Shown: piece after piece, positions 8,996-64,000 of the stretch | Numbering within the stretch: position 1 is the first letter of the stretch | Layout of the letters: the number at the start of each line of letters is the position of its first letter | NCBI GenBank assembly: GCA_963924565.1 | Contig: OZ004608.1 | Span: 5,518,001 to 5,582,000 of the forward strand | Origin: Ascidiella aspersa | Lineage: Eukaryota | Direction: 5' to 3' | Length of the DNA: 64,000 bases | Notes under the pieces: generated by a model | What the model was told of the DNA's origin: nothing | The model's database searches: none | What the model saw: the letters and a program-made list of their open reading frames with translations, nothing else | Position numbers and translations under genes: made by a program

Positions 8996-11604
8996 AATAA
9001 ATTTTAGAACTTTTATCGTCGGCATTATGTGTTCTGTTGGAGGGCAAGATTCTGTGGTGAATACACATACAAAGCGAATATTAATAAAATTATTGAAAAA
9101 ACCAAAAACCTATAAGAGCAGTACAGCTTAGGTATGAAGTTCAAACAAAAAACGGCTGTGATTTTACACAAGCTTATATTTAAGATTGCCTTACCTAAAA
9201 AAAGACTGTTTTTTATTAATGGTGTAAAATTTCTTAAATCGGGGCGCCCAAACTGCTTCAATTTGCTACACTTTTTAATGAATCAAAACTATCCGCCTAC
9301 CATTAGGTTTAACATTGTTAAACATTGATCGTTTCTGGTTGGGCACGCATTGCTCGAAGTCATATTAAAAGTTTATTGTTTTCTCGTTTGCTTATCGAAA
9401 GGATGAAAGGGCATAGATTTTATACATAAAACCATGTTGGTAAGTCGACGGAGCTTTACTGTTGACCCCTAAAACTTGTGGTGCGATTTAGGTATTTACC
9501 CGCGAGTTTTGAAAGCCTTCGATTAGTTTAGAAAGTATGTAGCGGCCCTGTGATTTTGCGCATACGTGCACATTGGCTGAGGCTGTAAGACCATTGCTTT
9601 GTTTTGGGTAGACGCGAAATGGACATTGCGTTTGACCATTTTTAATAATTGCGTTTTTTTACCTGGAGAAATAGTAATAGTGCTTGTGTGTTCCTTGACA
9701 AATCAGACATTAAATCTATATGGTTCAAAAAATAGCCACATCGGATTGTTTCATTTTGTTTAACCACGTAAATTTCAGGTCAATTTCGCCAACTATCGCG
9801 CTTTAATTTTCATAGCCGTTACAGCTAGAGCCCTTTATCAGTTGGAATTAAACTGGTGTATAACCTACTTAACCTGGGCAAACCTGGGCAACACCGGGTA
9901 GTTCGTCTATTTTATGATATTTGCTTAGCCGTAAAACTTACGCTGCTTCGAGGTAAGCTCGCCATGGTTACGTTCATAACTAAGGTTGGTCAACTATAGT
10001 TCTAGAAATAATGGATTTGTTTTTTAAAGCTGTAACATAGCAAGAAACCATGCACCACAATTTGACGCCTTTTTCGCATTTAATCCAAAAGTATATCAAA
10101 ATATGTTTTCTCTGAACGTCATAAACATCCGTTGCACAAACATACCAGCTTTGACAACATTACGTGGCATTTGCGAATGGAAAACATGAGCTGAACACTG
10201 TTTGTTTGTACTTGTTTGTTTGTACCCAACTTTATCTAATAAATAATGTTCGCAATTGTTTTTCGTATCTATAGCTTTTCACCACCTACACTATAGCTGT
10301 GTATAACCACAAGTAACAAATTCAGGTGATGTTTAATTACCGAACCGAAATAAAGTAAATAAATCATATGATGTGTGTGTTAGTGTTTCGTCGCATTATA
10401 TATTCAATTGTGCAATATTGTAGCTGTTTAAACAATAAAGTTTACTTGTCAAATCGTCTTGATTGTTCACATTCTGTAAGCTTAGTTTCCGGTCATATCA
10501 TAGTCATGTATAGTTTATTAACATATCGATTCTTAGCGATTTATTAGGAAGCCTAATGAAAAGATAAATTCAACTTAATCCCCTTTTGTAACGGTGTGAA
10601 ATCGTAACAGGAATATGGATTCCCGTTATTATTAAATTTAAATTGATCCCCGATCTATCTTAAGTGGCAATGTCGGTACTCGTTCGATTCTTGGGAAGCA
10701 TCATGTCAAATCCTAAAACAAACCGATATACCAATTTCAACCATGACTTATACGATCCAACGTATCGTTTCGTTTTTAAGCAATTTAGAACAAAACATAT
10801 TAACCAACTATGGGAAACGCCAATGTAAATGACGTCATTTGACATGGAATAAGTTACTTATTCAGTACATTTTATCCCCAAACTAGGTGATCGATTCGGA
10901 CCGTAATACCTACTACAAACAGAGGGTTACCCCGCTATTGGTAAATCTATTCCAATTTACAAAAATACTTTACCCCCAACAGTAACCCTACAACACATAT
11001 ACACCGGGTTTTTTGTCTGTCGTTTACATAGCCTGTGACCATAGACATAAACTAACGCTTTTGACCTTGTGAAGCGTTTGCGGTTATTAAATTTATTTGT
11101 ACCCTTTTAGATTTTATGCTTTTTTTGCTTAAATATATTATTACAAAAAGTCGTTGAAATCGAAGTGAAATAATATTATAGTTACTGCAATAGTTATAAT
11201 TAGTATAGCTTATCGGTCCTAACACAGTTTTGTGCTTTAAAACGCTTATTTCTAGTTTCTTCAAGCCAATACGAACTTATTCTTGTCATATTAATCTCCG
11301 CCTTACAAATACTGTTCAGGCGCAAAATAATATTTGTTTTATTACACAAAGCAAGCATTCGTACTAACGAGAGCAAGGTTTCGTCGTAAAACAAATAAAA
11401 CCTTATGTTGCTAATTTGTAACTATTAGTCGATAGCGATGGCGTTTGACAAGCGTGTGGGTGATTTCTCACAGCCAGTTATCGGCAGGTAAGAAGCAACG
11501 TTGGACTGTATGCGTAAAGTTGCATGTGAAACAGATTCTTAGCTCGCACAAATAGATTTAAAACTTAGTTTTAAACGCCGAAGATCCTGGCCAATCAGCT
11601 AGGT

Positions 11605-12245
11605 CAGTGGTTCCCAAACTGTGGGCCATGGCCCAGGAGTGGGACACAAGACTATTTTTAGTGTGCCGTGGAGCTATTTGTAAATATTGCAACTAAATAT
11701 GTTTTGTTTATCTAAAATAATTGTTAGCATATCTAAAACCATATAGGCATAAGGCCAATTTCCATATTGTTGACAATTTGCAAACTTTACACGTAAAGGC
11801 GAAGTCTCACGGCATATGTTTTTTAACTACGCAATTAGCACGGTAGTTTACTTTAAATTCCAGATGTTTTCGTACAAAGATATTTATTTCCATAAATGAA
11901 CCGGGTGTGAAAAGGATTACTTGAATGTTATTTGAATCAATTCATTTATTGAGAAATTGTCCAACTTTGTAGGCGTAAATTACAGACATGCAATTTTATT
12001 CTCAAACTTTTTGTTTGTAGTCCACTAAAATATTCGCGGCAAAATCCCTGCAAAACACGTTACAACTGTCCCTATAACACTGTATATAAGGCAATAAGTG
12101 AAAACATAGCCTTATTAATTATCATTACTTTTGTAATGGTTAGTGTGCATTTAGGCCTGCATGCTTGTCTATTTTCCTATTTGTTACACATTAGTTATTT
12201 TTCAAACTTACAAAACTTTCACGGCACGCAGTTTAAGAATCGCTG
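11605..12245. mobile_element. Old hAT-type MITE in the array spacer; further copies start at 36485 and 40079 (right TIR deleted), with partial copies in other spacers
   Basis: Termini cagtggttcccaaactg / cagtttaagaatcgctg; no TSD recognisable. Confidence 0.6.
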
Positions 12246-12523
12246 ACTTTAAATGTCGTTTCACCCCGTGCTGATAGTAGTTCTTACAATTATTTTTGGG
12301 GGACTTTTCAAATGTCTAATATTGAAATGCTACTGATATAGGGTGTAAGCGAACCGGCGTATTCTGAGAATCACCGAATTCAACAATTTTCTGCGGGCCA
12401 CTGTGGCACTCTCGTACTTTACCACTGCCTAAAGACAAGGTTCCTTTTACCAACAATTAGGATCGCTATAAGGCGGAATCGATTTTTTGCTGGAAGGCGA
12501 CGTAAAATGTTGACACACAGCCA

Positions 12524-12896: not shown

Positions 12897-13517
12897 ATGG
12901 AGGAAGTCTGGCATTTCACCTGTTCCGTTGAGGGAATTCAATCGCGATACAAAAACGGAAACGAAGATTTTTACTCGGAGAAGGGAATGGTAGACGGAAC
13001 AATGTGGCATGTGGAGTTTGGGCCGGTTGACGACGACGACGAAAATGACGATTATGATGATAATCAGCTGGCTGGAACTTGTGGGTTGCTGAAGGTCTCA
13101 GACAGCCAGGCCATTCCGACTCATTGGGAAGACGCGAAATGGGCTGTGAAGCGTAATTTTAAAAAAGCTCGCTACATTGAAGAAAGTGAAAGCGAATTCG
13201 TGTCCGAATACAGCGATATAATGATGAAGAACATCGCCTTCACTCTTCGGGGCCAGGAAATGGAAACGCATTGCGGTTATGAAGAATCAAATGGCACTTG
13301 GGAGGTTGTGACGCATAGCGCGGTGACGCATTATGATGTTTCTGGTGAAGGTGTTCACGGTCTAATTACTTCGGCGAATGAAATTACTTTGAACCAAGCT
13401 GCCATCTACTTGGCCAAAACTTTTGGGCCTAGCTTGGTGAGATGGGTTAGCCGTTGCGTTAACCCCGGAGGGTGGAGATACTCTTGGTGGAAATCTTCGC
13501 TTAATAGAACACTTTAA
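12897..13517 (+). CDS. Array gene A1, unknown protein, 206 aa (stop read-through variant)
   Basis: First ATG at 12897; uninterrupted ORF; family TAG changed to TGG, adding 9 aa. Confidence 0.82.
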   Translation: MEEVWHFTCSVEGIQSRYKNGNEDFYSEKGMVDGTMWHVEFGPVDDDDENDDYDDNQLAGTCGLLKVSDSQAIPTHWEDAKWAVKRNFKKARYIEESESEFVSEYSDIMMKNIAFTLRGQEMETHCGYEESNGTWEVVTHSAVTHYDVSGEGVHGLITSANEITLNQAAIYLAKTFGPSLVRWVSRCVNPGGWRYSWWKSSLNRTL

Positions 13518-14326: not shown

Positions 14327-14913
14327 GGCAACGAAGCGTTGTACTCAGAAACCGGAATGAAGGACGGCGAAATGTGGCAGGTGAATTTTGGCCCAGTCGA
14401 CGTCAATGATGACGATGACAGTAAAGATAACGTAGACGATAACGTAGAGGATGACTTCGATGATGAAGTCGACGATGATGACCAGCTAGCTGGCGTTCGT
14501 AGATTGCTGAGGGTATCTGACCTCCAGGCCATTCCGACTCATTAGGAAAAGGTGGAATGGGCTGTGAAGCGAATTTTCACCGAAACTCGGTACATTAAAG
14601 AAAGTGAAAGCGAATTCGTGTCCAAATACAGCGATACAATGATGAAGAATATTGCCTTTATACTCAGGGGCGAAGGAATAGAAGAGTGCTGGAATGCTGT
14701 AGAGTGTAGACAGTATTGGTGATTTGAAAGTTGTGACGCAATTTCGCGTCAAGACGTATAGAAATTCTGGTAAATGCCAAGGCCTCATCACTTCAACTAG
14801 CGAGGTTACTTTTTATGAAGCTGCAACCTGCTTGGCCAATAAGTTCGGTCCTGATGTTGTGAGATGGTTAGGCCGTTGCACCGATCCTCAAATATGGCAA
14901 GATATCTTGGTAA
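14327..14913 (+). pseudogene. Array pseudogene P1
   Basis: Homology starts at GNE; TGG>TAG after AIPTH; several frameshifts. Confidence 0.88.
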
Positions 14914-17787
14914 AGATATTATGATTGCGCTATTGTGCATAATGTTTCTGCAATAATTATTCGGCGACGTCGATTGTGACTATACAATTTGACGCAATAG
15001 TAAAATACAAACCATATTTAATTTGTACGCTTTTGTATTGGTGTTTGTCTAAAATGTTTAATAAATAATCTTGCATAAGTAATCGTGCTCCTGAAATGAT
15101 TATTTATATTTGTTCGTTATGTGCTTCTTCAAATACTTAAAGAAAACCTTGCTTTTACGAAATTTAAATATAAAGATAACTGTTCACTTAACGTTTGCAT
15201 GTTTATCGCCTCGTCTGCGTGCTTAAGTATTTCTGCAATTGGATTTCGCATCTACAGCTTTTCACCACCTACTTTATAGCTGTGTATAACCACAAGTATA
15301 CAAAATCAGCTGATGTAGAATTACCGAACCGAGATAAAGTAAATAATTTATGAGATATGTGTGTTTGTTTTTTGTCGCATTATATATTCAAGTGTGTATC
15401 AATTGTAGCTGCTTAAACAATAAAATTGACTTGTTAAATCATCGTGATTGTTCTCATTCTGTAAGCTTTGTTTCCGGTCATGTCATAGTCATGTATAGTT
15501 ATAATTATATCGATTCATTGCGATTTATGAGGAAGCCTTGTAAATAGGGAAATTAAACTTAAGCCTCTTGCGTTACGGTGAGAAATTGTAAGAGGAATAT
15601 GGATGCCGATATATCCATTTTACCCATAGCTTCCAAACGTAGCGTGTAAACTAAATATAAAATTGTAACTAAATATAAGGTAACGCTAATGTAAATGACG
15701 TCATTTGACATGGAATAAGTTACTTATTCAGTACATTTTGCCCCAAAACTTGGGTATCAATATCGCAACCCACTACATACTATAAATAAAGGTAACCTCG
15801 CGATTGTTAATTCCATACCTATTTGCAAAAAAACCTACCCCAACAGTAACCCTACAACACATATACACAAGGTCTGTTGTCTGGCGTTCGCATAGCATGT
15901 AGCCATAGACATAAACTTACAGCTGTTAGCTTTGTGAAGCGTTTGCCGCTATTCAATTTATAAATAAATAAATAAATTTAATTCTGCCCCTTTAGATTCC
16001 ACGCTTTTTCTCATAAAGATATTCTTACATAAAGTTATTGAAATCAAAGTAAAATGATATTATAGTTACTGCAATAGTTAAAATTAGTATAGTTTATCTG
16101 TCCTTTTTTGCTCAAACTAGTTACTTCTTATTCAAGCCAATACGAAGTTATTTTTGTCATATTAACCTCCGCCTTACAAAATACCCTTTGACCCCGAGAT
16201 GAATATTTGTTTTATTACACAACGCAAGCATTCTTTCTTACGAGAGCAAGGTTTCGTCGTAAAACAAATAAAAGCTTTAACTATGTTGGTAATTTGCAAC
16301 TACTAGTCGTAAGCGATGGCTTATATAATTGCAATCTAAAAATCAAAAGACATTTAATTGCAATCTAAAAATAAACCGGGGATAAAAAGGATTATTAGAA
16401 GGTTGTTTGAATTTATGCATTTATTGAGAAATTGTCCGACTTTGTATAGGCGTAAATTGCAGACACGCAATTTTATTCTCAAACCTTTGGGTTTGCAGTC
16501 CACTAAATATTAGCGGCAAAATCCCTGCAAAACACGTTACAACTGTCCCTAGCAAACTGTATATAAGGCAATAGCCTAATTATCATTAATTTTGTAGTGG
16601 AATTTATCATTACTTTTTGTAGCACTTTTGTAGTGGAGTGTGCATTTTGGTCGCACGCGTACCCATTTTCCTATTTGTTACACATAAGTTATTTTTTAAA
16701 CTTACAAAACTTTCACGGCACGCAGTTTAAGAATAGCTGACTTTAAATGTCGTTTAACCACGTACTGATAGTAGTTCTTACAATAATTTGTTGGGGGCTT
16801 TTCGAATGTATAATATTGAAATGCTACTGATATAGGGTGTAAGCGAACAGGCGTATTCTGAGAATCACCAAATTCAACAAGTTTCTGCGGGCCACTGTGG
16901 CACTCTCGTACTTTACCACTGCCCCAAGACAAGGTTCTTTTTACCAACTATTACTCTATATTCGTGTATGTCGAACAACTGGAAATTATTTTTCCAAAGT
17001 TTGAGTAATTGAAAAGTAGCGCCAAACTAAATCGAACATTCGCATCTTATGCTTTAGCGCACTTTACTTGGATATAAGCATACTTAACCATATTGCACCT
17101 ACTCGCTATATTTCGACTAACATCAACAATTTCGTAGGTTTTTTGCATGAGATAACTCTCGTGACGTATGATTAAAACTTATAGTTGATTAATAAAAGTT
17201 GTTCTGTGCACTCACATAGTAAAACTAAATTGGTCGAAAACTATTTCGTAAGCCGTGAAATTATTAATTGACTCAACAACTTACACACGAAAGGCTGCAG
17301 AATTCGTAAGCGCTTCTAAAGTAACAATTCGAGTAGTTATAGGTTCAATTAGGATCGCTATAAGGCGGAATCGATTTTTTGTTGGGCAGCGATGTCAGAT
17401 GTTGACACACAGCCGCGACGTCATATATATATATAAGCAATACGACATCGTATATCGATTCAACAACGTTATACAGCCGAAAGACCATTTGTTAATAAAG
17501 CGGTTCTGTATATTTCAGTTCGACTGACAAAAATCTCGCATAAATCAGCTCATATTTGACAAATTAGCTGAAAACCGTTCTTAAAAATCCTGCTTGACGG
17601 TTCGAATCCCTGGTTTAAGCTTTGCATTTTCTTAGGCAGAAATGTTTTGCCTAGGTTATTTTAAGTCTTTTCTGGCTGCATTTATTTGGCTTTAACTCGC
17701 TCTACTATTTTAGTCATGCAGGAATTTTTCAATTGTTGAAAAAACACCATTTATTGGTTGATTGCTGCTGTTCCGATAAAGATAATA

Positions 17788-18381
17788 ATGGAAGAAGTGT
17801 GGCATTTCACCTTTCCTGTTGAGAGGATTCGACCGCAGTACGAAAACGGAAACGAAGATTTTTACTCGGAGAAGGGAATGGTAGACGGACAAATGTGGCA
17901 CGTGGAGTTTGGGCCGGTTGACGACGACGACGAAAATGACGATTATGATGATAATCAGCTGGCTGGAACTTGTGGGTTGCTGAAGGTCTCAGACAGCCAA
18001 CCCATTCCTTCTTACTGGAAAGACGCGAAATGGGCTGTGAAGCGAACTATCACCGGAGCTGAATCGATTGAAAACAGTGAAAGCGAATTCGTGCCCGAAT
18101 ACAGCGATATAATGATGAAGAACATCGCCTTCACCCTTCGGGGCCAAGGAATGGAAGAGTGCTGTAATGTTGAAGCCAGTATTGGCAGATTGCAGGTTGT
18201 TACGCATAGTGAGGTAAAGAAGTATGCTACTACCGGCAAAGGCGTACATGGTCTGATAAGTTCTGCAAATAAGGTTACTATGTACGAAGCTGCAACCTGC
18301 TTGGCCGATAAGTTCGGTTCTGGCGTTGTGAGATGGTTAGGCCGTTGCACCGATCCTGGAAGATGGCAGAATTCCTGGTAG
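17788..18381 (+). CDS. Array gene B1, unknown protein, 197 aa
   Basis: Intact ATG-TAG ORF, MEEVWHFTFPVERIR...PGRWQNSW. Confidence 0.85.
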   Translation: MEEVWHFTFPVERIRPQYENGNEDFYSEKGMVDGQMWHVEFGPVDDDDENDDYDDNQLAGTCGLLKVSDSQPIPSYWKDAKWAVKRTITGAESIENSESEFVPEYSDIMMKNIAFTLRGQGMEECCNVEASIGRLQVVTHSEVKKYATTGKGVHGLISSANKVTMYEAATCLADKFGSGVVRWLGRCTDPGRWQNSW

Positions 18382-19470
18382 CCGTATTAGAATTGTGATA
18401 TTGTGCATAATGTTCAAGCCAATTATTCGGCAACCTTGATTGTGATTATACCACTTTAATGCAATATTAAAACACAAACATTACTAATTTGAACCCTTTG
18501 TATTGCTTCGGTGTTCGCTACAGAAAAGAAAGCAGTAATTTGTTAGTGCACGTTAAAGAGCTTTTATCAATAAATTGAGGCGTTTTTAAAAGGTCATTAT
18601 TATTTGTTGCCAGAGCCGGACCCAGAGTGGCACGAGGTCACGACCCCCCAAACAATATTTTTGCTAATTTTACCACCTACAACCTAAGTGACAAAATAAA
18701 TAGTTTTATAGTTAAAATAAGTTATTCTGGTATTTATTTGTCTTACTTTCAGTAAATTATTCTTGCATAAGAAATCGTGCTCCTGTAATGATTATTCATA
18801 TTTGTTCGGTATGTGCTTCTTCAAATCACCAATGAAAACCTTGCTTTTACGAAATTTAAGTATAAAGATAATGCGCATTCAACGTTTGCATATTTATCGC
18901 CCCGTCTGCGTGCTTTAGTATTTTCGTAATTGGTTTTCGCATCTATAGCTTCTCACCACCTACTTTATAGCTGTGCATAACCACAGGTATACAAAATCAG
19001 GTGATGTAGAATTACCGAACCGAGATAAAGTAAATAAATCATATGATGTGTGTGTTTGTGTTTCGTCGCATTATATATTCAAGTGTGTATCAATTGTAGC
19101 TGCTTAAACAATAAAATTTAATTGTTAAATTATCGTGATTGTAAATTTAATTCAAAAAATTGTAACTTAATATACGTTAACGCTAATGTAAAATGACGCC
19201 ATTTAACATGGAATCAGCTAGTCTTAAACTGTGTGCCGTGGAAGTTTTGTAAGTTTGAAAAATAACTAATGTGTAACACATAGGAAAATAGGCAAGCATG
19301 TGAGACTAAATGCAACACTATCCATTACAAAATTAATGATAATTAGGCTATTGCCTTATATACAGTTTGTTAGGGACAGTGGTAACGTGTTTTGCGGGGA
19401 TTTTGCCGCTAATATTTTAGTGGACTGCAAACCAAAAGGTTTGAGAATAAAATTGCGTGTCTGCAAATTT

Positions 19471-20057
19471 GGCAACGAAGCGTTGTACTCAGAAACCGGA
19501 ATGAAGGACGGCGAAATGTGGCAGGTGAATTTTGGCCCAGTCGACGTTAATGATGACGATGACAGTAAAGATAACGTAGACGATAACGTAGAGGATGACT
19601 TCGATGATGAAGTCGACGATGATGACCAGCTAGCTGGCGTTCGTAGATTGCTGATGATATCTGACCTCCAGGCCATTCCGACTCATTAGGAAGAGGTGGA
19701 ATGGGCTGTGAAGCGAATTTTCACCGAAACTCGGTACATTAAAGAAAATGAAAGCGAATTCGTGTCCAAATACAGCGATACAATGATGAAGAATATTGCC
19801 TTTACACTTAGGGGCGAAGGAATAGAAGAGTTCTGCAATGCTGTAGTGTAGACAGTATTGGTGATTTGAAAGTTGTGACGCAATTTCGCGTCAAGACGTA
19901 TAGAAATTCTGGTAAATGCTTCCACGGCCTCATCACTTCAACTAGCGAGGTTACTTTTCATGAAGCTGCAACCTGCTTGGCCGAAAAGTTCGGTCCTGAT
20001 GTTGTGAGATGGTTAGTCCGTTGCACCGATCCTCAAATATGGCAAGATTCTTGGTAA
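19471..20057 (+). pseudogene. Array pseudogene P2
   Basis: Same 5' truncation and premature TAG as P1; +5 frameshift at ctgtagtgtagac. Confidence 0.88.
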
Positions 20058-22747: not shown

Positions 22748-23341
22748 ATGGAGAAAATGTGGCATTTTACCTTTCCTGTTCAGAGGATTCTACGGCGATA
22801 CGAAAACGGAAACGAAGAATTGTACTCGAAATGCGGGATGCTAGACGGAACAATGTGGTACGTGGAGTTTGGGCCGGTTGCCAGTGATACCCACCTGGCT
22901 GGAAATTGTGGATTGCTGAAGGTGTCAGCCAACCCGAACGGCCAACCCGAACCCATTCCGTCTTGTTGGAATGAAGTGGATTGTGCTCTTAAGAGAATAT
23001 TCACAGAAGCTCACGACACGGAAAATAAAGTAGTTGCATTCCGATCTGAATACAGCCCTACAATGAAGAAGAATATTGCCTTCACACTTCGGGGCCAGGG
23101 AATGGAAAAGTTCTGCGGTCGTGAAGAAACATATGTAGGATCAAATGGCTCTTGGGAGGTTGAGACGCATGGCGCGGTGACGCATTATGATTATTCTGGT
23201 AAAGGTGTTCACGGTCTAATTACTTCGGCGAATGGAATCGATTTGAACGAAGCTGCCAGCTACTTGACCAGCAAGTTCCCTGGCTTGGTGAGATGGGTTA
23301 GCCGTTGCGTTAACCCCGAAGGGTGGCAATACTCTTGGTAG
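22748..23341 (+). CDS. Array gene C1, unknown protein, 197 aa
   Basis: Intact ORF MEKMWHFTFPVQRIL...PEGWQYSW. Confidence 0.85.
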   Translation: MEKMWHFTFPVQRILRRYENGNEELYSKCGMLDGTMWYVEFGPVASDTHLAGNCGLLKVSANPNGQPEPIPSCWNEVDCALKRIFTEAHDTENKVVAFRSEYSPTMKKNIAFTLRGQGMEKFCGREETYVGSNGSWEVETHGAVTHYDYSGKGVHGLITSANGIDLNEAASYLTSKFPGLVRWVSRCVNPEGWQYSW

Positions 23342-25822: not shown

Positions 25823-26416
25823 ATGGAGGAAGTCTGGCATTTCACCTGTTCCGTTGAGGGGATTCGATCGCGATACAAAAACGGAAACGAAGATTTTTAC
25901 TCGGAGAAGGGAATGGAAGACGGAACAATGTGGCACGTGGAGTTTGGGCCGGTTGACGACGACGACGAAAATGGCGACTATGATGATAATCAGCTGGCTG
26001 GAACTTGTGGATTGCTGAAGGTCTCAGACAGCCAGGCCATTCCTTCTTACTGGAAAGACGCGAAATGGGCTGTGAAGCGAACTATCACCGGAGCTGAATC
26101 GATTGAAGAAAGTGAAAGCGAATTCGTGTCCGAATACAGCGCTACAATGATGAAGAACATCGCCTTCACTCTTCGGGGCCAGGAAATGGAAACGCATTGC
26201 GGTTATGAAGAATCCAATGGCACTTGGGAGGTTGAGACGCATGTGGAGGTGACGCATTATGATGATACTGGTGAATGTGTTCACGGTCTAATTACTTCGG
26301 CGAATGAAATTACTTTGAACCAAGCTGCCATCTACTTGGCCAAAACTTTTGGGCCTGGCTTGGTGAGATGGGTTAGCCGTTGCGTTAAACCCGGAGGGTG
26401 GAGATACTCTTGGTAG
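25823..26416 (+). CDS. Array gene A2, unknown protein, 197 aa
   Basis: Intact ORF MEEVWHFTCSVEGIR...PGGWRYSW. Confidence 0.85.
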   Translation: MEEVWHFTCSVEGIRSRYKNGNEDFYSEKGMEDGTMWHVEFGPVDDDDENGDYDDNQLAGTCGLLKVSDSQAIPSYWKDAKWAVKRTITGAESIEESESEFVSEYSATMMKNIAFTLRGQEMETHCGYEESNGTWEVETHVEVTHYDDTGECVHGLITSANEITLNQAAIYLAKTFGPGLVRWVSRCVKPGGWRYSW

Positions 26417-27629
26417 CAATCTTCGCTTAATACAACACTTTAATTCGCTGATCTTTAATATTTCCCTTTTAACGCAATATTGAAACACATGCGATTAACA
26501 ATGTTTATCAGTATTGTTTGTTTCTGTCTATTGGTTAACAAATAATCTTACCTAATCGTGCTCCTGTAATGATTATTCATATTTTGTCGTTATGTGCTTC
26601 TTAAAATACCTAACGAAAATCATTCTTCAACGAAATTTCAATATAAAGATAACTGCGCATTCAACGTTTATATGTTTATCGCCTCGTCTGCGTGCTTTTC
26701 TATGTTCGTAATTGGTTTTCGCATCTATAGCTTTTCACCACCTACACTATAGCTGTGTATAACCACAAGTATACAAAATCAGGTGATGTTGAATTACCGA
26801 ACCGAGATGAAGTAAATATTTCATATGATGTGTGTGTTTGTTTTTTGTCGCATTATATATTCAAGTGTGTATCAATTGTAGCTGCTTAAACAATAAAATG
26901 TAATTGTTAAATTATCGTGATTGTAAATTTAATTCAAAAAATTGTAACTTAATATACGTTAACGCTAATGTAAAATGACGTCATTTAACATGGAATCAGC
27001 TAGTCTTAAAATGTGTGCCGTGGAAGTTTTGTAAGTTTGAAAAATAACAAATGTGTAACACATAGGAAAATAGGCAAGCATGTGAGACTAAATGCACACT
27101 ATCCATTACAAAATTAATGATAATTAGGCTATTGCCTTATATACAGTTTGTTAGGGACAGTTGTAACGTGTTTTGCGGGGATTTTGCCGCTAATATTTTA
27201 GTGGACTGCAAACCAAAAGGTTTGAGAATAAAATTGCGTGTCTGCAAATTTGGCAACGAAGCGTTGTACTCAGAAACCGGAATGAAGGACGGCGAAATGT
27301 GGCAGGTGAATTTTGGCCCAGTCGACGTCAATGATGACGATGACAGTAAAGATAACGTAGACGATAACGTAGAGGATGACTTCGATGATGAAGTCGACGA
27401 TGATGACCAACTAGTTGGAATTTGTAGATTGCTGATGATATCTGACCTCCAGGCCATTCCGACTCATTAGGAAGAGGTGGAATGGGCTGTGAAGCGAATT
27501 TTCACCGAAACTCGGTACATTAAAGAAAGTGAAAGCGAATTCGTGTCCAAATACAGCGATACAATGATGAAGAATATTGCCTTTATACTCAGGGGCGAAG
27601 GAATAGAAGAGTTCTGCAATGCTGTAGAG

Positions 27630-29464
27630 CAGTGTTTCTTAACCTTTTTCACCCCAGGGCGCACCTGTAAACCTTTCGAAACGTGGCGGTGCACCTGACG
27701 AGCGAGTCGACTGCTAACTTTGTTTTTTGCTGGCAGTTTTTATTACATCAGGCTCCCAATTCTATTATATATTAAACAGCTTGCGGAGTCGGTTAAAAAT
27801 AACCCGACTCCAACTCCCGAATCCGACTCCGGCCAAATGTGTGATTTCGTCAAATTCCGAGTCCGTCTGCAAACCTACAGCATTTAATTTTCCCATTTAC
27901 GTAACTAAATTAAGGTGGATTTTCAACAATCCCTTCATAGGGGTGTTATATCTCATCCAACCACAATACATTGCTGGAAAATATCCACGATATGCTATTT
28001 CGCCATTTTAATTTGCATTTGGCGGCATTATTAGTTCAAAAATTGGCACTGCGCACGTCGGACTCGGGACTCGGGACTCCATCAGTCCGATTTCAGCAAA
28101 ATAAATCGATTACAGTACGCCGAGTCTCAAAAACTACACTGACCTGCTATAAAATACGATGTGCTCAATAAGACATAACCTAAAAAGAAAGAAAATAAAT
28201 GAAATAGGCCATTCATGTTGTAAATTATGAAAACATACCGTATGTTAGTTAAAGTTCGATGGAAACACAGAATAAGCCCCAAGAGCAACAACATCTAACT
28301 CGGAATAAATCCAAAATGTAACGGAAAAAAACTAATAATGCCCAAAACTGTAAAAAAAACAGGGTATGGGACGATTAAAGGACATATTCTTGGCATCGGC
28401 CGTTTTTGTGCCATAGTGTTAGGGCACAGGATTGTTTGCCTCTGTTTGGGGTTAGGCGCGAGTAATGGGTAGAATTATAATTTGGGGGGAGTTTGTATTG
28501 AAGTTATGGGTGGGGTTTGGGTAGGGTTCCTCTTTTCCCCACATTTTTTTACACCCGGGAAACGGGATTGACAAATGAAACTTCCCGGGAATCCTGACGA
28601 AATTTTCGTGCCCTAATTACGTCATTATGATGATTAAAATTACTTTATATTAGCTCCAAACGTTTAATTAAGCTCATTTATGTTCTGTAGTATTGCTTCT
28701 GCAATCTTACAAGACGTTCTCGTATTAACGTCAGCACCCTTATTTGTTTTTTTTAGAAAACACGCGCATATTAGGCGTTTTTTTATTGGTAAAATAAATT
28801 TAATTACGTTTTTCCGCTGGTAAGCGCAAAAAAAGCAACTCAAGCAACGACTTTAATAGGTTTGGCAACATTTTTTTCTTTATATTAGTCAAAAACGATA
28901 ATTTTTTTTAAGTTTTGCTATGTTGCCGAATAACCGGGATTATAAAAAAAATTTCCCGGGATTCGGGATCGTTATTTCGCGGGAAAGCCCGGGAATTTCC
29001 CGTCGAAACATTCCCGGAGAGGAACCCTAGGTTTGGGGTTAAGTAAAAGGTAGGAAAGGCCTTATTCTTGCCATTTAGGCCTTATTCGGACGAATTGAGG
29101 TCTTATTTTGATTTAAACGCTATTACGAGTATTAGGTATTAGTCCTATTTTGGTCTTACTCCGAACTGTTTTATATGTCGAAGTAGCTGTTGCTTTAATT
29201 GTGGTCTTAAGGCGGAAGCCCCACTAGATTGCAATAGTTCCTCTTTTTTTGTTAGCTAAGAGCCAACATCAACCATTGGCACTTCAATAAGGGCTACGAA
29301 TCCAGTCATATTGCTCAGTGTTTATTCACAGAAAATAGTGACTAGAGTTTATTCTAAAATTATTCGCAAATTCTACAAATAATACAGAATTTTTGTAACA
29401 TTTTTTCCCATTTTCTCGCGGTGCACCTGGCCACCTTCCACGGCGCACCGGTTGAGAAACGCTG
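27630..29464. mobile_element. Non-autonomous composite hAT element, 1835 bp
   Basis: TIRs cagtgtttcttaacc / ggttgagaaacgctg; exact 8-bp TSD CTGTAGAG; empty site visible in P1. Confidence 0.92.
28522..29029. mobile_element. Nested hAT MITE with TAGGG termini, 508 bp
   Basis: TIRs tagggttcctct / agaggaacccta; exact 8-bp TSD GGTTTGGG; subterminal CCCGGGA motifs. Confidence 0.9.
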
Positions 29465-42303: not shown

Positions 42304-43516
42304 CAATCTTCGCTTAATACAACACTTTAATTCGCTGATCTTTAATATTTCCCTTTTAACGCAATATTGAAACACATGCGATTAACAATGTTTATCAGTA
42401 TTGTTTGTTTCTGTCTATTGGTTAACAAATAATCTTACCTAATCGTGCTCCTGTAATGATTATTCATATTTTGTCGTTATGTGCTTCTTAAAATACCTAA
42501 CGAAAATCATTCTTCAACGAAATTTCAATATAAAGATAACTGCGCATTCAACGTTTATATGTTTATCGCCTCGTCTGCGTGCTTTTCTATGTTCGTAATT
42601 GGTTTTCGCATCTATAGCTTTTCACCACCTACACTATAGCTGTGTATAACCACAAGTATACAAAATCAGGTGATGTTGAATTACCGAACCGAGATGAAGT
42701 AAATATTTCATATGATGTGTGTGTTTGTTTTTTGTCGCATTATATATTCAAGTGTGTATCAATTGTAGCTGCTTAAACAATAAAATGTAATTGTTAAATT
42801 ATCGTGATTGTAAATTTAATTCAAAAAATTGTAACTTAATATACGTTAATGCTAATGTAAAATGACGTCATTTAACATGGAATCAGCTAGTCTTAAAATG
42901 TGTGCCGTGGAAGTTTTGTAAGTTTGAAAAATAACAAATGTGTAACACATAGGAAAATAGGCAAGCATGTGAGACTAAATGCACACTATCCATTACAAAA
43001 TTAATGATAATTAGGCTATTGCCTTATATACAGTTTGTTAGGGACAGTTGTAACGTGTTTTGCGGGGATTTTGCCGCTAATATTTTAGTGGACTGCAAAC
43101 CAAAAGGTTTGAGAATAAAATTGCGTGTCTGCAAATTTGGCAACGAAGCGTTGTACTCAGAAACCGGAATGAAGGACGGCGAAATGTGGCAGGTGAATTT
43201 TGGCCCAGTCGACGTCAATGATGACGATGACAGTAAAGATAACGTAGACGATAACGTAGAGGATGACTTCGATGATGAAGTCGACGATGATGACCAACTA
43301 GTTGGAATTTGTAGATTGCTGATGATATCTGACCTCCAGGCCATTCCGACTCATTAGGAAAAGGTGGAATGGGCTGTGAAGCGAATTTTCACCGAAACTC
43401 GGTACATTAAAGAAAGTGAAAGCGAATTCGTGTCCAAATACAGCGATACAATGATGAAGAATATTGCCTTTATACTCAGGGGCGAAGGAATAGAAGAGTT
43501 CTGCAATGCTGTAGAG

Positions 43517-45351: not shown

Positions 45352-48337
45352 CTGTAGAGTGTAGACAGTGTTGGTGATTTGAAAGTTGTGACGCAATTTC
45401 GCGTCAAGACGTATAGAAATTCTGGTAAATGCTTCCACGTCCTCATCACTTCAACTATAGAGGTTACTTTTTATGAAGCTGCAACCTGCTTGGCCGAAAA
45501 GTTCGGTCCTGATGTTGTAAGATGGTTAGGCCGTTGCACCGATCCTCAAATATGGCAAGATTCTTGGCAAAGATATTATGATTGCGCTATTGTGCATAAT
45601 GTTTCTGCAATAATTATTCGGCGACGTCGATTGTGACTATACAATTTGACGCAATAGTAAAATACAAACCATATTTAATTTGTACGCTTTTGTATTGGTG
45701 CTCGCTACAGAAAAAATGCAGCAAATTGAGAGTACACAATGCAACTAAGAGAAGTTTTTGGCAATAAAATGGGGACGTTTTTAAAATGTCATCAATATTT
45801 GTGGCCAGAGCCGGATCTAGGCACGGGACCATGGTCCCCAAACTATATATTTTGCTAATTTTAACTATACCTAAGTAAAAAAACAAATAGTTTTAGTATG
45901 TATAGCCCATTTTAAGGGTAACTTTGCAGACTTCCTTGAGGTATGACGTCACAAATTTCATCATAACGTGACGTCATAAAACATTTAACCTTAGAAAAGC
46001 TGTTTTTTTCTAGCGCACAATCCTTCGCCCAAATGGAGCTGTAATACAGTCCAATAGGTTAATGGTATAGCAAAGGGTAAAAAAAAACTATACGTTACGC
46101 ATAAAGCACATAAAAAAGAGTCTTGCATATGTTCCGAAACAAAGGAATTTATCGTACAATTTAGCAAAAAATACACTTTACGAAGTTTATGAGCGACACG
46201 ATGCAACATACGACGAGCCAAATTCCAAGTGGGCTAAAAAGATTTTCGAAAAATGGACGAAAACGTTGTAACATGGATAGATGCTTGCCAAACGTTTTTG
46301 TAATACCGTGATAAAAGTAAAAATATATAAGAATCTATTTTGTGGGCATGGCCCTATGGCTCCACCTCTCTTGATTAGCGCCAGACACTTTCAAAGGACT
46401 CGTGTGAAGTTTCAAAGTGCTTAGTGTTCAACCGCTTTAAATATGCCGTATTCAACACCGGCAACCAATAAACAGCTATTTCAAATCAAGGGGAAGTTGC
46501 TACGTAACCTCACGTGACTGCTCTTAAAACCGCCTATTGGCTGGAATAGGCGTCATTTCGGAGGTCACGCGTACCTCGTGCCACTTGATAACGTTAAAGA
46601 GAACGCTGACTATAAAGAAGGGCATACTCAATAAGACCTACAAGGCAACAATATCTAAAGCGGAATAGTCTTTAATACCGTAGTTTTACGACCAACGACA
46701 TAATAAAGCCAAATACAAAGTAATATCCATGACAGAATAAGATCTAAATCGTCTAAAAATTATCCACGCCAGATATACATACGTGTGTTTTTAAATAAAC
46801 ATATATTACATATCCATAATAAAGCCACATATAGCAATATCCACGACAGAATAAGATCTAAATCGTCTAAAATTCCAACCGTCAAACATCTCCCAACCGA
46901 CAATTAAACCGCCACTGTGGTATCTTTTCACATCTAGGAAGACAATACCCTAGTAACCTGGTCATACAAGTACTTACAGAAGGCAAATTTATATGTCGCG
47001 ACATTCCCAATGTTTCGAGAAATTCCTATTCCCTAACTTTTATCGCTTTGGCACGTTTGTCGTCCTTAAATTAAGTTCTACCCATGACTGATTTTTTAAA
47101 TACGTCAACAGTCGAACAAAAAACATCTAACAACCATCCATTAGTAGCGCACGTTTAATTCGCGAAAGCGAATGATCCTTATAATATTGTTTTTGTGCAA
47201 ATAAAAACAAAATGCTGCGCCAAAGTTTTGGTAATTGTTTCGAGAAAGTCGTTTGTGGGGACAACTTGGCAAACATTTCACTATGCACATTCAGTAACCA
47301 GATTTTACTCCGCATTTGTCCAAAGATACAGCGTAATATATCTGCTAACAATTAACTCATTAATATCTGCGGAAGTCTTGTTGCGTATGCATAGACGCGT
47401 TTCCTGTAGGTGTATGCAAGTATAATTACGTTAAGTAAGAACACTAGCCCTATTCTATATACTGGTTTACGTTTAATCATATGAATTTGATAGTCATTTA
47501 TTTTTTTGTATTAAAGTAGATTATAGTCTCTGCGTGCGCACCAGGCATAGACGTGTTTGCTGTACGTTAATAAATAGATAATACATGTGACGTATCTATT
47601 TTTTGTTTGTATCATATTCTGGTTTTCTAAACGATATTGTTCGAGTTTCTTAAGACTCATGCAGCCATCATTACCTTATGAAATCGTGGTAAAATATTAC
47701 TAAATATGGTGTAATAGGGACAATTAGTGTGTGTTTTCGCAGTTGAAACAGTTTGTCTAGACTTTTCTGTCTTGGTAATAGGAAGTCATTTGTAAGTTCC
47801 ACTGGTTCATGAAGTATATTTCGCCACAAAACACGGCATCATCAGTCTCTTAATGAAATACAATTTATTTGAAATTTATAGCTTCTATTCGAATAAGAGA
47901 CTGTTGTCTTATTTTGTTGCGAAATATATTTCTCTTTTAAGCGATTAAAACTTATAAATGACTGACGTTGACCAAGACAGGAAAGTCTACTCTAAAGAAG
48001 AGTTGCTTCCATTTGAAGTCGTCATTTATTTGTAAGGGCGACGAGACATCTTCATATTTTACACAATCAGTTTGCCATTGATACAGTTATGGTTGCCTTT
48101 AAAACGAGGTAAAGCGCTTAGCAATGTCAAAACAGGGCCCCATTCGGTTTAAATACCTGGTTTAAGCTTTGCGTGTTCTTATAGTCACAATCTTTTTACC
48201 TGAATTATTTACGTATTTTCTTGCTGCATTTATTTGGCTTTAACTCGCTCCACTATTTTGGTCAGACAGGTATTTTCCAATTGTTTGAAAAAAACAGCTT
48301 TTATTGATTGTTTGCTGCTGTTCCGATAAAGATAAAA

Positions 48338-48931
48338 ATGGAGAAAATGTGGCATTTTACCTTTCCTGTTCAGAGGATTCTACGGCGATACGAAAACGGA
48401 AACGAAGAATTGTACTCGAAATGCGGGATGCTAGACGGAACAATGTGGTACGTGGAGTTTGGGCCGGTTGCCAGTGATACCCACCTGGCTGGAAATTGTG
48501 GATTGCTGAAGGTGTCAGCCAACCCGAACGGCCAACCCGAACCCATTCCGTCTTGTTGGAATGAAGTGGATTGTGCTCTTAAGAGAATATTCACAGAAGC
48601 TCACGACACGGAAAATAAAGTAGTTGCATTCCGATCTGAATACAGCCCTACAATGAAGAAGAATATTGCCTTCACACTTCGGGGCCAGGGAATGGAAAAG
48701 TTCTGCGGTCGTGAAGAAACATATGTAGGATCAAATGGCTCTTGGGAGGTTGAGACGCATGGCGCGGTGACGCATTATGATTATTCTGGTAAAGGTGTTC
48801 ACGGTCTAATTACTTCGGCGAATGGAATCGATTTGAACGAAGCTGCCATCTACTTGACCAGCAAGTTCCCTGGCTTGGTGAGATGGGTTAGCCGTTGCGT
48901 TAACCCCGAAGGGTGGCAATACTCTTGGTAG
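48338..48931 (+). CDS. Array gene C3, 197 aa
   Basis: As C1 except AASYL>AAIYL. Confidence 0.85.
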   Translation: MEKMWHFTFPVQRILRRYENGNEELYSKCGMLDGTMWYVEFGPVASDTHLAGNCGLLKVSANPNGQPEPIPSCWNEVDCALKRIFTEAHDTENKVVAFRSEYSPTMKKNIAFTLRGQGMEKFCGREETYVGSNGSWEVETHGAVTHYDYSGKGVHGLITSANGIDLNEAAIYLTSKFPGLVRWVSRCVNPEGWQYSW

Positions 48932-51823: not shown

Positions 51824-52417
51824 ATGGAAGAAGTGTGGCATTTCACCTTTCCTGTTGAGAGGATTCGACCGCAGTACGAAAACGGAAACGAAGATTTTTA
51901 CTCGGAGAAGGGAATGGTAGACGGACAAATGTGGCACGTGGAGTTTGGGCCGGTTGACGACGACGACGAAAATGACGATTATGATGATAATCAGCTGGCT
52001 GGAACTTGTGGGTTGCTGAAGGTCTCAGACAGCCAACCCATTCCTTCTTACTGGAAAGACGCGAAATGGGCTGTGAAGCGAACTATCACCGGAGCTGAAT
52101 CGATTGAAAAAAGTGAAAGCGAATTCGTGCCCGAATACAGCGATATAATGATGAAGAACATCGCCTTCACCCTTCGGGGCCAAGGAATGGAAGAGTGCTG
52201 TAATGTTGAAGCCAGTATTGGCAGATTGCAGGTTGTTACGCATAGTGAGGTAAAGAAGTATGCTACTACCGGCAAAGGCGTACATGGTCTGATAAGTTCT
52301 GCAAATAAGGTTACTATGTACGAAGCTGCAACCTGCTTGGCCGATAAGTTCGGTTCTGGCGTTGTGAGATGGTTAGGCCGTTGCACCGATCCTGGAAGAT
52401 GGCAGAATTCCTGGTAG
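51824..52417 (+). CDS. Array gene B2, 197 aa
   Basis: As B1 except SIENS>SIEKS. Confidence 0.85.
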   Translation: MEEVWHFTFPVERIRPQYENGNEDFYSEKGMVDGQMWHVEFGPVDDDDENDDYDDNQLAGTCGLLKVSDSQPIPSYWKDAKWAVKRTITGAESIEKSESEFVPEYSDIMMKNIAFTLRGQGMEECCNVEASIGRLQVVTHSEVKKYATTGKGVHGLISSANKVTMYEAATCLADKFGSGVVRWLGRCTDPGRWQNSW

Positions 52418-53506: not shown

Positions 53507-54092
53507 GGCAACGAAGCGTTGTACTCAGAAACCGGAATGAAGGACGGCGAAATGTGGCAGGTGAATTTTGGCCCAGTCGACGTCAATGATGACGATGACG
53601 TTAAAGATAACGTAGACGATAACGTAGAGGATGACTTCGATGATGAAGTCGACGATGATGACCAACTAGCTGGCTTTGTAGATTGCTGAGGATATCTGAC
53701 CTCCAGGCCATTCCGACTCATTAGGAAAAGGTGGAATGGGCTGTGAAGCGAATTTTCACCGAAACTCGGTACATTAAAGAAAGTGAAAGCGAATTCGTGT
53801 CCAAATACAGCGATACAATGATGAAGAATATTGCCTTTACACTTAGGGGCGAAGGAATAGAAGAGTGCTGCAATGCTGTAGTGTAGACAGTATTGGTGAT
53901 TTGAAAGTTGTGACGCAATTTCGCGTCAAGACGTATAGAAATTCGTGTAAATGCTTCCACGGCCTCATCACTTCAACTAGCGAGGTTACTTTTCATGAAG
54001 CTGCAACCTGCTTGGCCGAAAAGTTCGGTCCTGATGTTGTGAGATGGTTAGTCCGTTGCACCGATCCTCAAATATGGCAAGATTCTTGGTAA
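53507..54092 (+). pseudogene. Array pseudogene P5
   Basis: 5' truncation, premature TAG, extra frameshifts. Confidence 0.88.
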
Positions 54093-56782: not shown

Positions 56783-57355
56783 ATGCAGGAAGTGTGGCCT
56801 TTCGCCTTTCCCGTTCAGACGATTATACCGCGATACGAAAACGGAAACGAAGAATTGTACTCGGAATGCGGGATGGAAGACAGACAAATGTGGTACGTGG
56901 AGTTTGGGCCTGCATATCTCAGTACTGGTACCCATCTGGCTGGAAATTGTGGATTGCGGAGGGTGTCAGACGGTCAACCCATTCCGTCTCGTTGGAATGA
57001 CGTGGATAGGGCTCTTCAGAGAATATTCACAGGAGCTTACGACACGGAAAATGAAGTAGTTGCATTCCGATCTGATTACAGCGATACAATGATGAAGAAT
57101 ATTGCCTTCACACTTCGGGGCCAGGGAATGGAACAGTGCTGCGGTTATGTAGACTCAAATGGCTCTTGGGAGCTTGAGACGCATGGCGCGGTGACGCATT
57201 ATGATGATACTGGTGTAGGTGTTCACGGTCTAATTACTTCGGCGAATGAAATCGCTTTGAACGAAGCTGCCATCTACTTGACCAGCAAGTTCCCTGGCTT
57301 GGTGAGATGGGTTAGCCGTTGCGTTAACCCCGAAGGGTGGCAATACTCTTGGTAG
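56783..57355 (+). CDS. Array gene D, divergent C-like paralog, 190 aa
   Basis: Intact ORF MQEVWPFAFPVQTII...PEGWQYSW within C-type flanks. Confidence 0.85.
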   Translation: MQEVWPFAFPVQTIIPRYENGNEELYSECGMEDRQMWYVEFGPAYLSTGTHLAGNCGLRRVSDGQPIPSRWNDVDRALQRIFTGAYDTENEVVAFRSDYSDTMMKNIAFTLRGQGMEQCCGYVDSNGSWELETHGAVTHYDDTGVGVHGLITSANEIALNEAAIYLTSKFPGLVRWVSRCVNPEGWQYSW

Positions 57356-60238: not shown

Positions 60239-60832
60239 ATGGAAGAAGTGTGGCATTTCACCTTTCCTGTTGAGAGGATTCGACCGCAGTACGAAAACGG
60301 AAACGAAGATTTTTACTCGGAGAAGGGAATGGTAGACGGACAAATGTGGCACGTGGAGTTTGGGCCGGTTGACGACGACGACGAAAATGACGATTATGAT
60401 GATAATCAGCTGGCTGGAACTTGTGGGTTGCTGAAGGTCTCAGACAGCCAACCCATTCCTTCTTACTGGAAAGACGCGAAATGGGCTGTGAAGCGAACTA
60501 TCACCGGAGCTGAATCGATTGAAAACAGTGAAAGCGAATTCGTGCCCGAATACAGCGATATAATGATGAAGAACATCGCCTTCACCCTTCGGGGCCAAGG
60601 AATGGAAGAGTGCTGTAATGTTGAAGCCAGTATTGGCAGATTGCAGGTTGTTACGCATAGTGAGGTAAAGAAGTATGCTACTACCGGCAAAGGCGTACAT
60701 GGTCTGATAAGTTCTGCAAATAAGGTTACTATGTACGAAGCTGCAACCTGCTTGGCCGATAAGTTCGGTTCTGGCGTTGTGAGATGGTTAGGCCGTTGCA
60801 CCGATCCTGGAAGATGGCAGAATTCCTGGTAG
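60239..60832 (+). CDS. Array gene B3, 197 aa
   Basis: Protein identical to B1. Confidence 0.85.
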   Translation: MEEVWHFTFPVERIRPQYENGNEDFYSEKGMVDGQMWHVEFGPVDDDDENDDYDDNQLAGTCGLLKVSDSQPIPSYWKDAKWAVKRTITGAESIENSESEFVPEYSDIMMKNIAFTLRGQGMEECCNVEASIGRLQVVTHSEVKKYATTGKGVHGLISSANKVTMYEAATCLADKFGSGVVRWLGRCTDPGRWQNSW

Positions 60833-61921: not shown

Positions 61922-62323
61922 GGCAACGAAGCGTTGTACTCAGAAACCGGAATGAAGGACGGCGAAATGGGCTGTGAAGCGAATTTTCACCGAAACTCGG
62001 TACATTAAAGAAAGTGAAAGCGAATTCGTGTCCAAATACAGCGATACAATGATGAAGAATATTGCCTTTATACTCAGGGGCGAAGGAATAGAAGAGTGCT
62101 GCAATGCTGTAGTGTAGACAGTATTGGTGATTTGAAAGTTGTGACGCAATTTCGCGTCAAGACGTATAGAAATTCTGGTAAATGCTTCCACGGCCTCATC
62201 ACTTCAACTAGCGAGGTTACTTTTCATGAAGCTGCAACCTGCTTGGCCGAAAAGTTCGGTCCTGATGTTGTGAGATGGTTAGTCCGTTGCACCGATCCTC
62301 AAATATGGCAAGATTCTTGGTAA
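61922..62323 (+). pseudogene. Array pseudogene P6 with ~185-bp internal deletion
   Basis: ggcgaaatg joined to ggctgtgaag, removing the acidic loop; +5 frameshift retained. Confidence 0.88.
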
Positions 62324-64000
62324 AGATATTTTGATTGCGCTATTGTGCATAATGTTTCTGCAATAATTATTCGGCGACGTCGATTGTGACTATACAATTT
62401 GACGCAATAGTAAAATACAAACCATATTTAATTTGTACGCTTTTGTATTGGTGTTCGCCACAGAAAAAATGCATCAAATTGAGAGTACACAATGCAACTA
62501 AGAGAAGTTTTTGGCAATAAAATGGGGGCGTTTTTAAAATGTCATCAATATTTGTGGCCAGAGCCGGATCTAGGCACGGGACCATGGCCCCCAAACTATA
62601 TATTTTGCTAATTTTAACTATACCTAAGTAAAAAAACGAATAGTTTTAGTATGTATAGCCCATTTTAAGGGTAACTTTGCAGACTTCCTTGAGGTATGAC
62701 GTCACAAATTTCATCATAACGTGACGTCATAAAACATTTAACCTTAGAAAAGCTGTTTTTCTCTAGCGCACTATACTACAAATGGAGATATAATACAGTC
62801 CAATAGGTTAATGGTATAGCAAAGGTTTAAAATAAAAACTATACGTTACGCATAAAGCACATAAAAAAGAGTTTTGCATATGTTCCGAAACAAAGGAATT
62901 TATCGTACAATTTAGCAAAAAATACGCTTTACGAAGTTTATGACACGATGCAACATACGACGTGACACGATGCAATGACACGATGCAACATACGACGAGC
63001 CAAATTCCAAGTGGGCTAAAAAGATTTTCGAAAAATGGACGAAAACGTTGTAACATGGATAGATGCTTGCCAAACGTTTTTGTAATACCGTGGTAAAAGT
63101 AAAAATATATAAGAATCTATTTTGTGGGCATGGCCCTATGGCTCCACCTCTCTTGATTAGCGCCAGACACTTTCAAAGGACTCGTGTGAAGTTTCAAAGT
63201 GCTTAGTGTTCAATCGCTTTAAATATGCCGTATTCAACACCGGCAACCAATAAACAGCTATTTTAAATCAGGTGAAGTTGCTACGTAACATCACGTGACT
63301 GCTCTTAAAACCACCTATTGGCTGGAATAGGCGTCATTTCGAAGGTCACGCGTACCTCGTGCCACTTGATAACGTTAAAGAGAACGCTGACTATAAAGAA
63401 GGGCACACTCAATAAGACCTACAAGGCAACAATATCTAAAGCGGAATAGTCTTTAAAACCGTAGTTTTACGACCAACGACATAATAAAGCCAAATACAAA
63501 GTAATATCCATGACAGAATAATATCTAAATCGTCTAAAATTCCAACTGTCAAACATCTCCCAACCGACAATTAAACCGCCACTGTGGTATCTTTTCACAT
63601 CTAGGAAGACAATACCCTAGTAACCTGGTCATACAAGCACTTCTAGAAGGCAATTTTATATGTCGTCCACATTCCCAATGTTTCGAGACATTCCTATTAC
63701 CTAACATTTATCGCTTTGACACGTTTGTCGTCCTTAAATTAAGCTCTACCCATAACTGATTTTTTAAATACGTCAAGGGTCGAACAAAAAATCATCTAAC
63801 AACCATCTATAGTAGCGCACGTATAATTGGCGGAAGCGAATGATCCTTATTGTATTGTTTTTTGTGCAAATAAAAACAAAATGCTGCGCCAAAGTTTTGG
63901 AAATTGTTTCGAGAAAGTCGTTTCTGAGGACCACTTGGCAAACATGTCACTATGCAAATTTAGTAACCAGGTTTTACTTCCGCATTGGTCCAAAGATACA

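Follow-up and report, generated by a model that had tools for sequence, protein, structure and literature searches.

We consider a tandem array of short genes in a 64,000-nucleotide stretch of contig OZ004608.1 (positions 5,518,001 to 5,582,000); the whole of this stretch is called the window here, and positions are counted from its first letter. The window has a GC fraction of about 0.37, and the array lies on its plus strand. The list of open reading frames (ORFs) gives 11 plus-strand frames of 200-217 codons between 12.8 and 60.8 kb, encoding 190-206 amino acids from the first ATG, and when one copy is searched against the window with tblastn, exactly these 11 intact genes come back, together with six disabled copies, all on the plus strand. 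These results and the self-blastn of the window agree, coordinates included, with the co-oriented array of 11 intact genes and six pseudogenes that a sequence-only reading of this DNA had proposed. An intronless gene has genuinely expanded in tandem here, and the expansion is specific to this species.

Layout and growth of the array

Self-blastn resolves the region from 10246 to 64000 into segmental duplications of 2-10 kb that are 93-99.5% identical, far beyond what chance would give. The block at 25378-35104, for example, is repeated at 41265-50989 with 99.5% identity, and that at 15037-25383 is repeated at 49057-59404 with 97.6% identity. Recent duplication of such blocks has made the array grow, with unequal crossing-over as the simplest mechanism, and since the last duplicated block runs off the window, the array probably continues past its end.

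The copies are assigned to types from protein and nucleotide alignments. Type A consists of g1, g4 and g7, type B of g2, g9 and g11, type C of g3, g5 and g8, and type D of g10; g6 is an A/B chimera, and the six pseudogenes (p1 to p6) make up type E. On the plus strand, with each intact gene given from its ATG, the array opens with g1 (12897..13517, type A, 206 amino acids) and p1 (14327..14903), followed by g2 (17788..18381, type B, 197 amino acids), p2 (19471..20054) and g3 (22748..23341, type C, 197 amino acids). The next genes are g4 (25823..26416, type A, 197 amino acids), p3 (27252..29680) and g5 (32452..33045, type C), whose coding sequence is identical to that of g3. The chimera g6 (37737..38330) stands by itself and is followed by g7 (41710..42303, type A), p4 (43139..45567) and g8 (48338..48931, type C). 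Then come g9 (51824..52417, type B), p5 (53507..54089) and g10 (56783..57355, type D, 190 amino acids), a fast-evolving sister of type C, and finally g11 (60239..60832, type B), with a coding sequence identical to that of g2, and p6 (61956..62320). The order along the window is thus A-psi, B-psi-C, A-psi-C, AB, A-psi-C, B-psi-D, B-psi, and the recurring unit that had been described, (A or B)-pseudogene-(C or D), is broadly right but has exceptions in this order. In g1, the stop codon that is usual in the family has been lost, which adds nine C-terminal codons (13488-13517).

Three lesions are common to the six pseudogenes: an in-frame stop stands where the intact genes have W77, the frame shifts around residue 127-130, and the first 20 codons are missing. 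The pseudogenes are 96-99.7% identical among themselves and only about 75% identical to the intact genes. Because the same stop, frameshift and 5' truncation are present in six of six, there was a single death: one copy was disabled long ago and has since been multiplied along with the duplicating unit. Later, private lesions were added: p3 and p4 (99.7% identical to each other) are each interrupted by about 1.9 kb of inserted non-coding sequence, so that their coding remnants lie at 27252-27620 with 29480-29680 and at 43139-43507 with 45367-45567; p5 has an extra frameshift in its acidic region; and p6 has also lost its 5' part through an internal deletion. The array had been described as a birth-and-death system with chimeras. 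Births and chimeras are borne out, while repeated deaths are not, since the shared lesions of the six pseudogenes trace to one death.

The insertion itself (about 27621-29479 and 43508-45366) contains short direct repeats and a 30-nucleotide inverted repeat that is imperfect. It is likely to be a mobile element of the non-autonomous kind and predates the 99.5% duplication. Opposite the GAY-repeat region of the pseudogenes there are also serine-rich antisense ORFs of 106 amino acids (14212-14532, 19356-19676 and 27137-27457, all on the minus strand), which most likely arise from the composition of the repeat rather than being genes.

Duplicated blocks that are this similar raise the question whether the assembly has laid haplotypes or collapsed repeats in tandem, in which case the true copy number would be lower or different. 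The identity between the largest blocks, over 2-10 kb, is 99.2-99.5%, which falls within the range of heterozygosity of many marine invertebrates. The window, however, has no N runs or gaps, and the differences between its copies are structured: the junctions are unique, one unit is a chimera, the 1.9-kb insertion is found in only two pseudogenes, and the deletions of p5 and p6 are distinct. Types A to E are too divergent to be alleles of a single gene, and tandem copies are also found in independent assemblies of other species. We consider an assembly artefact highly improbable.

The intact genes also share sequence outside their coding regions. A leader of about 190-200 nucleotides directly upstream of the ATG (in g2, about 190 nucleotides at 17598..17787, plus strand) is kept in all intact types (A, B, AB, C and D) and is conserved above the level of the coding sequence, while the similarity between A/B and C/D units stops upstream of it. 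This leader could be a regulatory 5' untranslated region or a homogenised tract. Further upstream, about 350 nucleotides from the ATG of g2, a cyclic-AMP-response-element-like GACGTCA followed by a TATA-like run (17417..17436, plus strand) is a candidate promoter; this stretch is present in the A, B and AB units only. As a candidate polyadenylation signal, the sequence has an AATAAA at 18569..18574 (plus strand), 188 nucleotides past the stop codon of g2.

Protein family and predicted fold

The array proteins are acidic (isoelectric point 4.5-5.9) and have a mass of about 22 kDa. They contain neither a signal peptide nor a transmembrane segment, as had been noted from the sequence; the maximum hydropathy over 19 residues is 0.56-0.88. 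A search of Pfam with single sequences and with a profile gives no match, and the same is true of the PDB chains by sequence and by profile, of PADLOC and PHROGs, and of a word-indexed protein search with a single sequence. The family that had been called unrecognised is thus still without a match in these libraries.

Relatives appear when a profile of the paralogs is used. With HMMER, this profile gives 11 matches among 1.84 billion representative proteins, of which nine are true relatives and two are spurious. The nine are 170-223 amino acids long, align over their full length and have the common motifs; the best of them (P0001) has an E-value of 1.8e-20 over residues 1-197, and the other eight have E-values of 2e-9 to 4e-4. 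Further profile searches add about 15 relatives, and with the family profile the members have E-values of 1e-33 to 1e-69. The two spurious matches are a Paulinella protein with 32 PAS repeats (P0002), which falls below zero with the family profile, and a sushi-repeat protein (P0005), in which only a short repeated 'GFTLNG' stretch matches. Scans of viral and metagenome contigs with the paralog alignment give no relatives, and looking up the exact window protein in public assemblies gives no record.

The relatives found in total number about 35, all of them unnamed, and are 20-34% identical to the window proteins. The family motifs are NGN..YS, W, a (V/I)AFTLR strand, GL and a C-terminus containing (Y/R/H)C, and the family alignments show N22, Y26, W37, A83, F115-T116-L117-R118, G155-L156 and L172 to be shared family-wide. 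In the window genes and the relatives alike, the coding region is a single uninterrupted ORF that encodes about 170-220 amino acids. The only member with any name is the 'unnamed protein product' CAK8687945.1 of Clavelina lepadiformis (UniRef A0ABP0GCS3; P0011), whose gene is a singleton between FAM228 and MRP-S24. This gene is intronless too, and the description of the window genes as intronless is upheld. The Clavelina protein and some 30 unnamed proteins are of the same family as the array protein, with the same length and motifs and with intronless genes, and tandem copies or fragments are found on several of the contigs. The Clavelina gene differs from the window array in being a singleton, and since the relatives are without a name, domain or role, they identify the family only.

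The other relatives lie on contigs from ENA, JGI and Logan assemblies. Since these contigs are long, poor in ORFs and carry reverse transcriptases, they look eukaryotic. On one of them (L007), family copies are found at 10001-10567 and 16677-17237; another (L008) has a copy at 10001-10603 and fragments at 13108-15819 on both strands, with an adjoining reverse-transcriptase ORF. Arrays with debris seem to be a habit of the family. The closest outside relative (P0001, 33% identity) is found as an identical protein in at least six independent assemblies (JGI, ENA and Logan), so the organism that it comes from has been sampled often. A maximum-likelihood tree groups the window genes in a single clade (support 100/100), which places the expansion within this lineage. 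The family is rare and undescribed and, judging from these contigs, eukaryotic. The tunicate relative, together with an ORF in the window of a kind known from Penelope-like elements (see below), suggests that the window is from an animal other than a mammal.

A structure model was made with AlphaFold for the sequence of g2. While an alignment of the paralogs only gives an unusable model, with a predicted local distance difference test score (pLDDT) of 42, the family alignment of 28 sequences gives a pLDDT of 90.2 and a predicted template modelling score of 0.86. The resulting model comprises eleven strands and five helices, and on its basis the array protein is predicted to be a soluble, compactly folded alpha/beta protein. 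The only soft spot is an acidic loop (residues 44-57, pLDDT about 73), which is encoded by GAY-rich repeats (17917..17958, plus strand) and whose length depends on the type, as it is absent in C, short in D and much longer in E. The beta-strand core is kept family-wide, together with N22, Y26, W37, T116, R118 and the FTLR strand, while loops and helices vary; among the window paralogs, 70% of loop, 64% of helix and 41% of strand positions are variable. The fold comparison covers the PDB and BFVD, and Foldseek finds no neighbour in the PDB at E<=0.001, with template modelling scores of 0.1-0.25. An internal duplication of the two halves was considered and rejected (hhalign probability 0.1%).

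Conserved residues of the window proteins could suggest an enzyme, because C62, H140 and H154 are invariant in all 11 of them with a Cys...His...His spacing, as in a papain-like or NlpC/P60-like hydrolase. These three residues, however, are replaced in all relatives outside the window, and there is no Pfam or PDB match and no structural match to papain-like folds. The lack of conservation outside the window effectively refutes the hydrolase for the family, which would leave only an activity gained in this lineage, and it is the least probable of the explanations weighed here. There is no conserved catalytic residue set in the family, so a non-enzymatic binding protein is most likely.

A second candidate is a domesticated viral gene. 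According to this explanation, the protein or its C-terminal half derives from the HUH nuclease domain of the replication protein (Rep) of a CRESS-DNA (circular Rep-encoding single-stranded DNA) virus, and, after its capture, lost its activity and was amplified; such an origin would account for the lack of introns, and the gene is indeed intronless in every species seen. Foldseek against the predicted viral structures of BFVD gives a local match to a Cruciviridae Rep over 85 columns (root-mean-square deviation 3.3, probability 1.00) and two others with probabilities of 0.96-0.97, but with E-values no better than 0.03-0.1, and the PDB matches include no solved Rep domain. For a comparison by profile, natural Rep-encoding contigs were taken from IMG/VR with a 21-nucleotide degenerate pattern for motif I, and 74 of their N-termini were aligned and compared with the family using hhalign. 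Over 90 columns, the C-terminal FTL, GL and YC of the family line up with Rep motifs I, II and III, yet the probabilities are 0.4-2% with E-values of 0.02-0.15 (about 1% for the whole family; 0.4% and E 0.15 for the C-terminal half).

The likeness thus consists of a local structural match of about 85-108 residues and of three short motifs in the same order and spacing. Against it, the array protein is acidic and has an extra N-terminal half. The histidine pair of the HUH motif is absent family-wide, where the aligned position reads (Y/H/R/F)-G-L with no second His or Gln, and the tyrosine of motif III (YxxK) is R-C in all window genes and, in most other members, Y-C without the Lys. There is no superfamily 3 helicase domain, as the protein ends at residue 197 with no P-loop; no Pfam Rep family matches; and no relative is found in IMG/VR. 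The resemblance is not supported as homology, and we hold a viral origin of this kind to be quite improbable.

Sequence exchange and selection

In g6, all 18 informative sites in the first 340 alignment columns are A-like, and 83 of the 87 that follow are B-like. Type B as a whole, including g2, resembles type A over the 5' two-thirds, by 88 sites to 6, and type E over the 3' third, by 49 to 27; the 3' third of type C is A-like. A tract of about 60 nucleotides in g1 matches the pseudogene lineage, with 11 E-like and 6 A-like sites, while only 7 of 167 sites are E-like elsewhere in this gene (Fisher p = 2e-9). These site counts, with solid statistical support, show the genes to be mosaics produced by exchange between paralogs, and, since E-like tracts are found in live genes, the dead lineage and the live genes have exchanged sequence as well. 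The chimeras that had been claimed for this array are borne out by the counts in g6 and by the g1 tract.

We examine the older divergences and the recent ones separately. For the older ones, the ratio of nonsynonymous to synonymous substitution rates (dN/dS) is 0.37-0.54, with bootstrap support for a proportion of nonsynonymous differences below that of synonymous differences (pN<pS) in the 3' third of A/B and the middle segment of A/C. The indels between intact genes, at least five events, are all in frame, and 11 of 11 frames are open despite protein divergence of up to 29%. The open frames, the in-frame indels and these ratios indicate that the genes have been under purifying selection; and because the frames are kept, the indels are in frame only and the ratios for the old differences are of this size, we infer that the genes are functional.

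The recent pair of types C and D gives a different picture. Their coding sequences are 9.5% divergent, compared with 2.2% for the flanks and at most 1% for the 800 nucleotides directly upstream. The overall dN/dS is 1.87, and codons 71-215 have 28.5 replacement changes against 1.5 silent ones, an excess with a Fisher p of 0.038 in this segment and of 0.18 over the whole gene. The changes are scattered and lie on both lineages, a pattern for which a single conversion tract does not account. Between types A and B, the 300 nucleotides upstream are 3.7% divergent and the coding sequences 18-20%. The claim that the array is diversifying therefore stands in part: the mosaics and the replacement excess between C and D agree with it, while the older comparisons, with dN/dS of 0.37-0.54, point to purifying selection and appear to weaken it.

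The next question is whether neutral amplification could account for the locus. A dispensable, lineage-restricted gene in a duplication-prone region would then have been multiplied by unequal crossing-over, homogenised in part by gene conversion, and left to drift under relaxed constraint with no role in any conflict. Whole-gene dN/dS near 1 for A against C (0.84-0.95) and for the pair of paralogs on the outside contig L007 (about 1.0) would fit this, and so would the lineage that is already dead and carried along, the lack of significance of the C/D excess over the whole gene, and the lack of any functional domain in the Pfam searches. A gene left to drift, however, is harder to reconcile with the purifying ratios of the old divergences and their bootstrap support, or with 11 frames kept open at such protein divergence while every indel stays in frame. 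In codons 71-215 of C and D, dN is 3-7 times the divergence of the flanks, and a confident fold is still predicted from a family at about 25% identity across species. On balance we find neutral amplification somewhat unlikely, though it deserves serious attention. If the copies do drift neutrally, the locus would be an ordinary lineage-specific segmental duplication.

A possible role and comparison with known systems

With these alternatives set out, we tentatively favour a protein that is non-enzymatic and binds inside the cell, whose core (N22, Y26, W37, T116 and R118) is conserved while its surface changes; our confidence in this reading is somewhat short of even. Such a protein, with a conserved scaffold and a fast-changing surface, would be best explained by a task of conflict or recognition. 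The copies would be pushed apart by positive selection after duplication, as the C/D pair suggests, and what the protein faces might be a pathogen or selfish element, or else a self/non-self cue.

Several points weigh against this binder. The signal of positive selection is modest and comes from one pair of types (C/D), the A/C and L007 ratios are compatible with relaxed selection as well as with diversifying selection, and recombination among the paralogs complicates any reading of dN/dS. The library searches find no known immune, recognition or toxin domain in the array protein, and no partner gene is recognisable in the repeat unit, whose nine ORFs outside the family have no Pfam match. The defence or self/non-self role that the sequence-only reading had proposed for the array is accordingly not supported, as there is neither a known immune domain nor a partner gene, and such a role is here a conjecture.

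A more specific version of the intracellular binder can be formulated, which we think unlikely. The family would be a new fold that works inside the cells of a marine invertebrate lineage, perhaps a tunicate one, as a module of recognition or restriction, in which the site formed by N22, Y26, W37, T116 and R118 would carry out a step common to all copies, while the variable surface and the acidic loop would determine the specificity for the target. The array, together with its dead copy, would act as a germline reservoir for gene conversion.

The phenomenon is of a known kind, while the family, and possibly the fold, is new. Sp185/333 of the sea urchin is a set of tandem, co-oriented mosaic genes with length-variable segments and fast evolution; its products are secreted, the genes have a leader exon, and immune induction is documented. 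The array is like Sp185/333 in its tandem mosaic layout and has no relationship to it in sequence or fold. Conversion templated by pseudogenes is known from the pseudo-V genes of chicken immunoglobulin and from the cassettes of bacterial or protozoan antigenic variation. Here, too, a dead copy lies beside live genes and shares short tracts with them (in g1 and in the 3' third of type B). The exchange in the array differs in being germline and evolutionary, not programmed and somatic; the tracts are few, and their direction of transfer is unproven.

A third comparison is with the fuhc locus of Botryllus, where BHF and HSP40L, polymorphic cytoplasmic proteins that are of the tunicate lineage and likewise lack a signal peptide, are proposed to act in recognition specificity (PMC12065747). 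Most of BHF is intrinsically disordered, and it is single-copy and under no strong selection (PMC12065747). By this description the array family is set apart from BHF, as it is compactly folded in the model (pLDDT 90) and multi-copy.

If the array genes are expressed and act in conflict or recognition, they would constitute a new family, possibly with a new fold, among the few intracellular immune or self/non-self components of invertebrates, and the locus would show plainly how, in nature, exchange among tandem copies and a linked pseudogene can rebuild specificity. Function aside, the array brings to light a new family of about 35 sequences that has a confident model and is unnamed in the databases.

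Outside the array, scans of the window with Rfam and for tRNA genes find nothing. Upstream of the array, the neighbouring G-protein-coupled receptor (GPCR) that had been reported is real, with a rhodopsin-type exon at 1563-1871 on the plus strand (7tm_1, E 4e-7; Srx-type, E 6e-6). Possible further exons of this GPCR lie at about 3563-3856, 3954-4115 and 6442-6621, and have no Pfam match when searched singly. Between the receptor and the array, a 134-amino-acid ORF that begins with an ATG (7060-7464, minus strand) contains a GIY-YIG nuclease motif with an E-value of 1.7e-4, just under the Pfam cut-off, and is probably a remnant of a Penelope-like retroelement.

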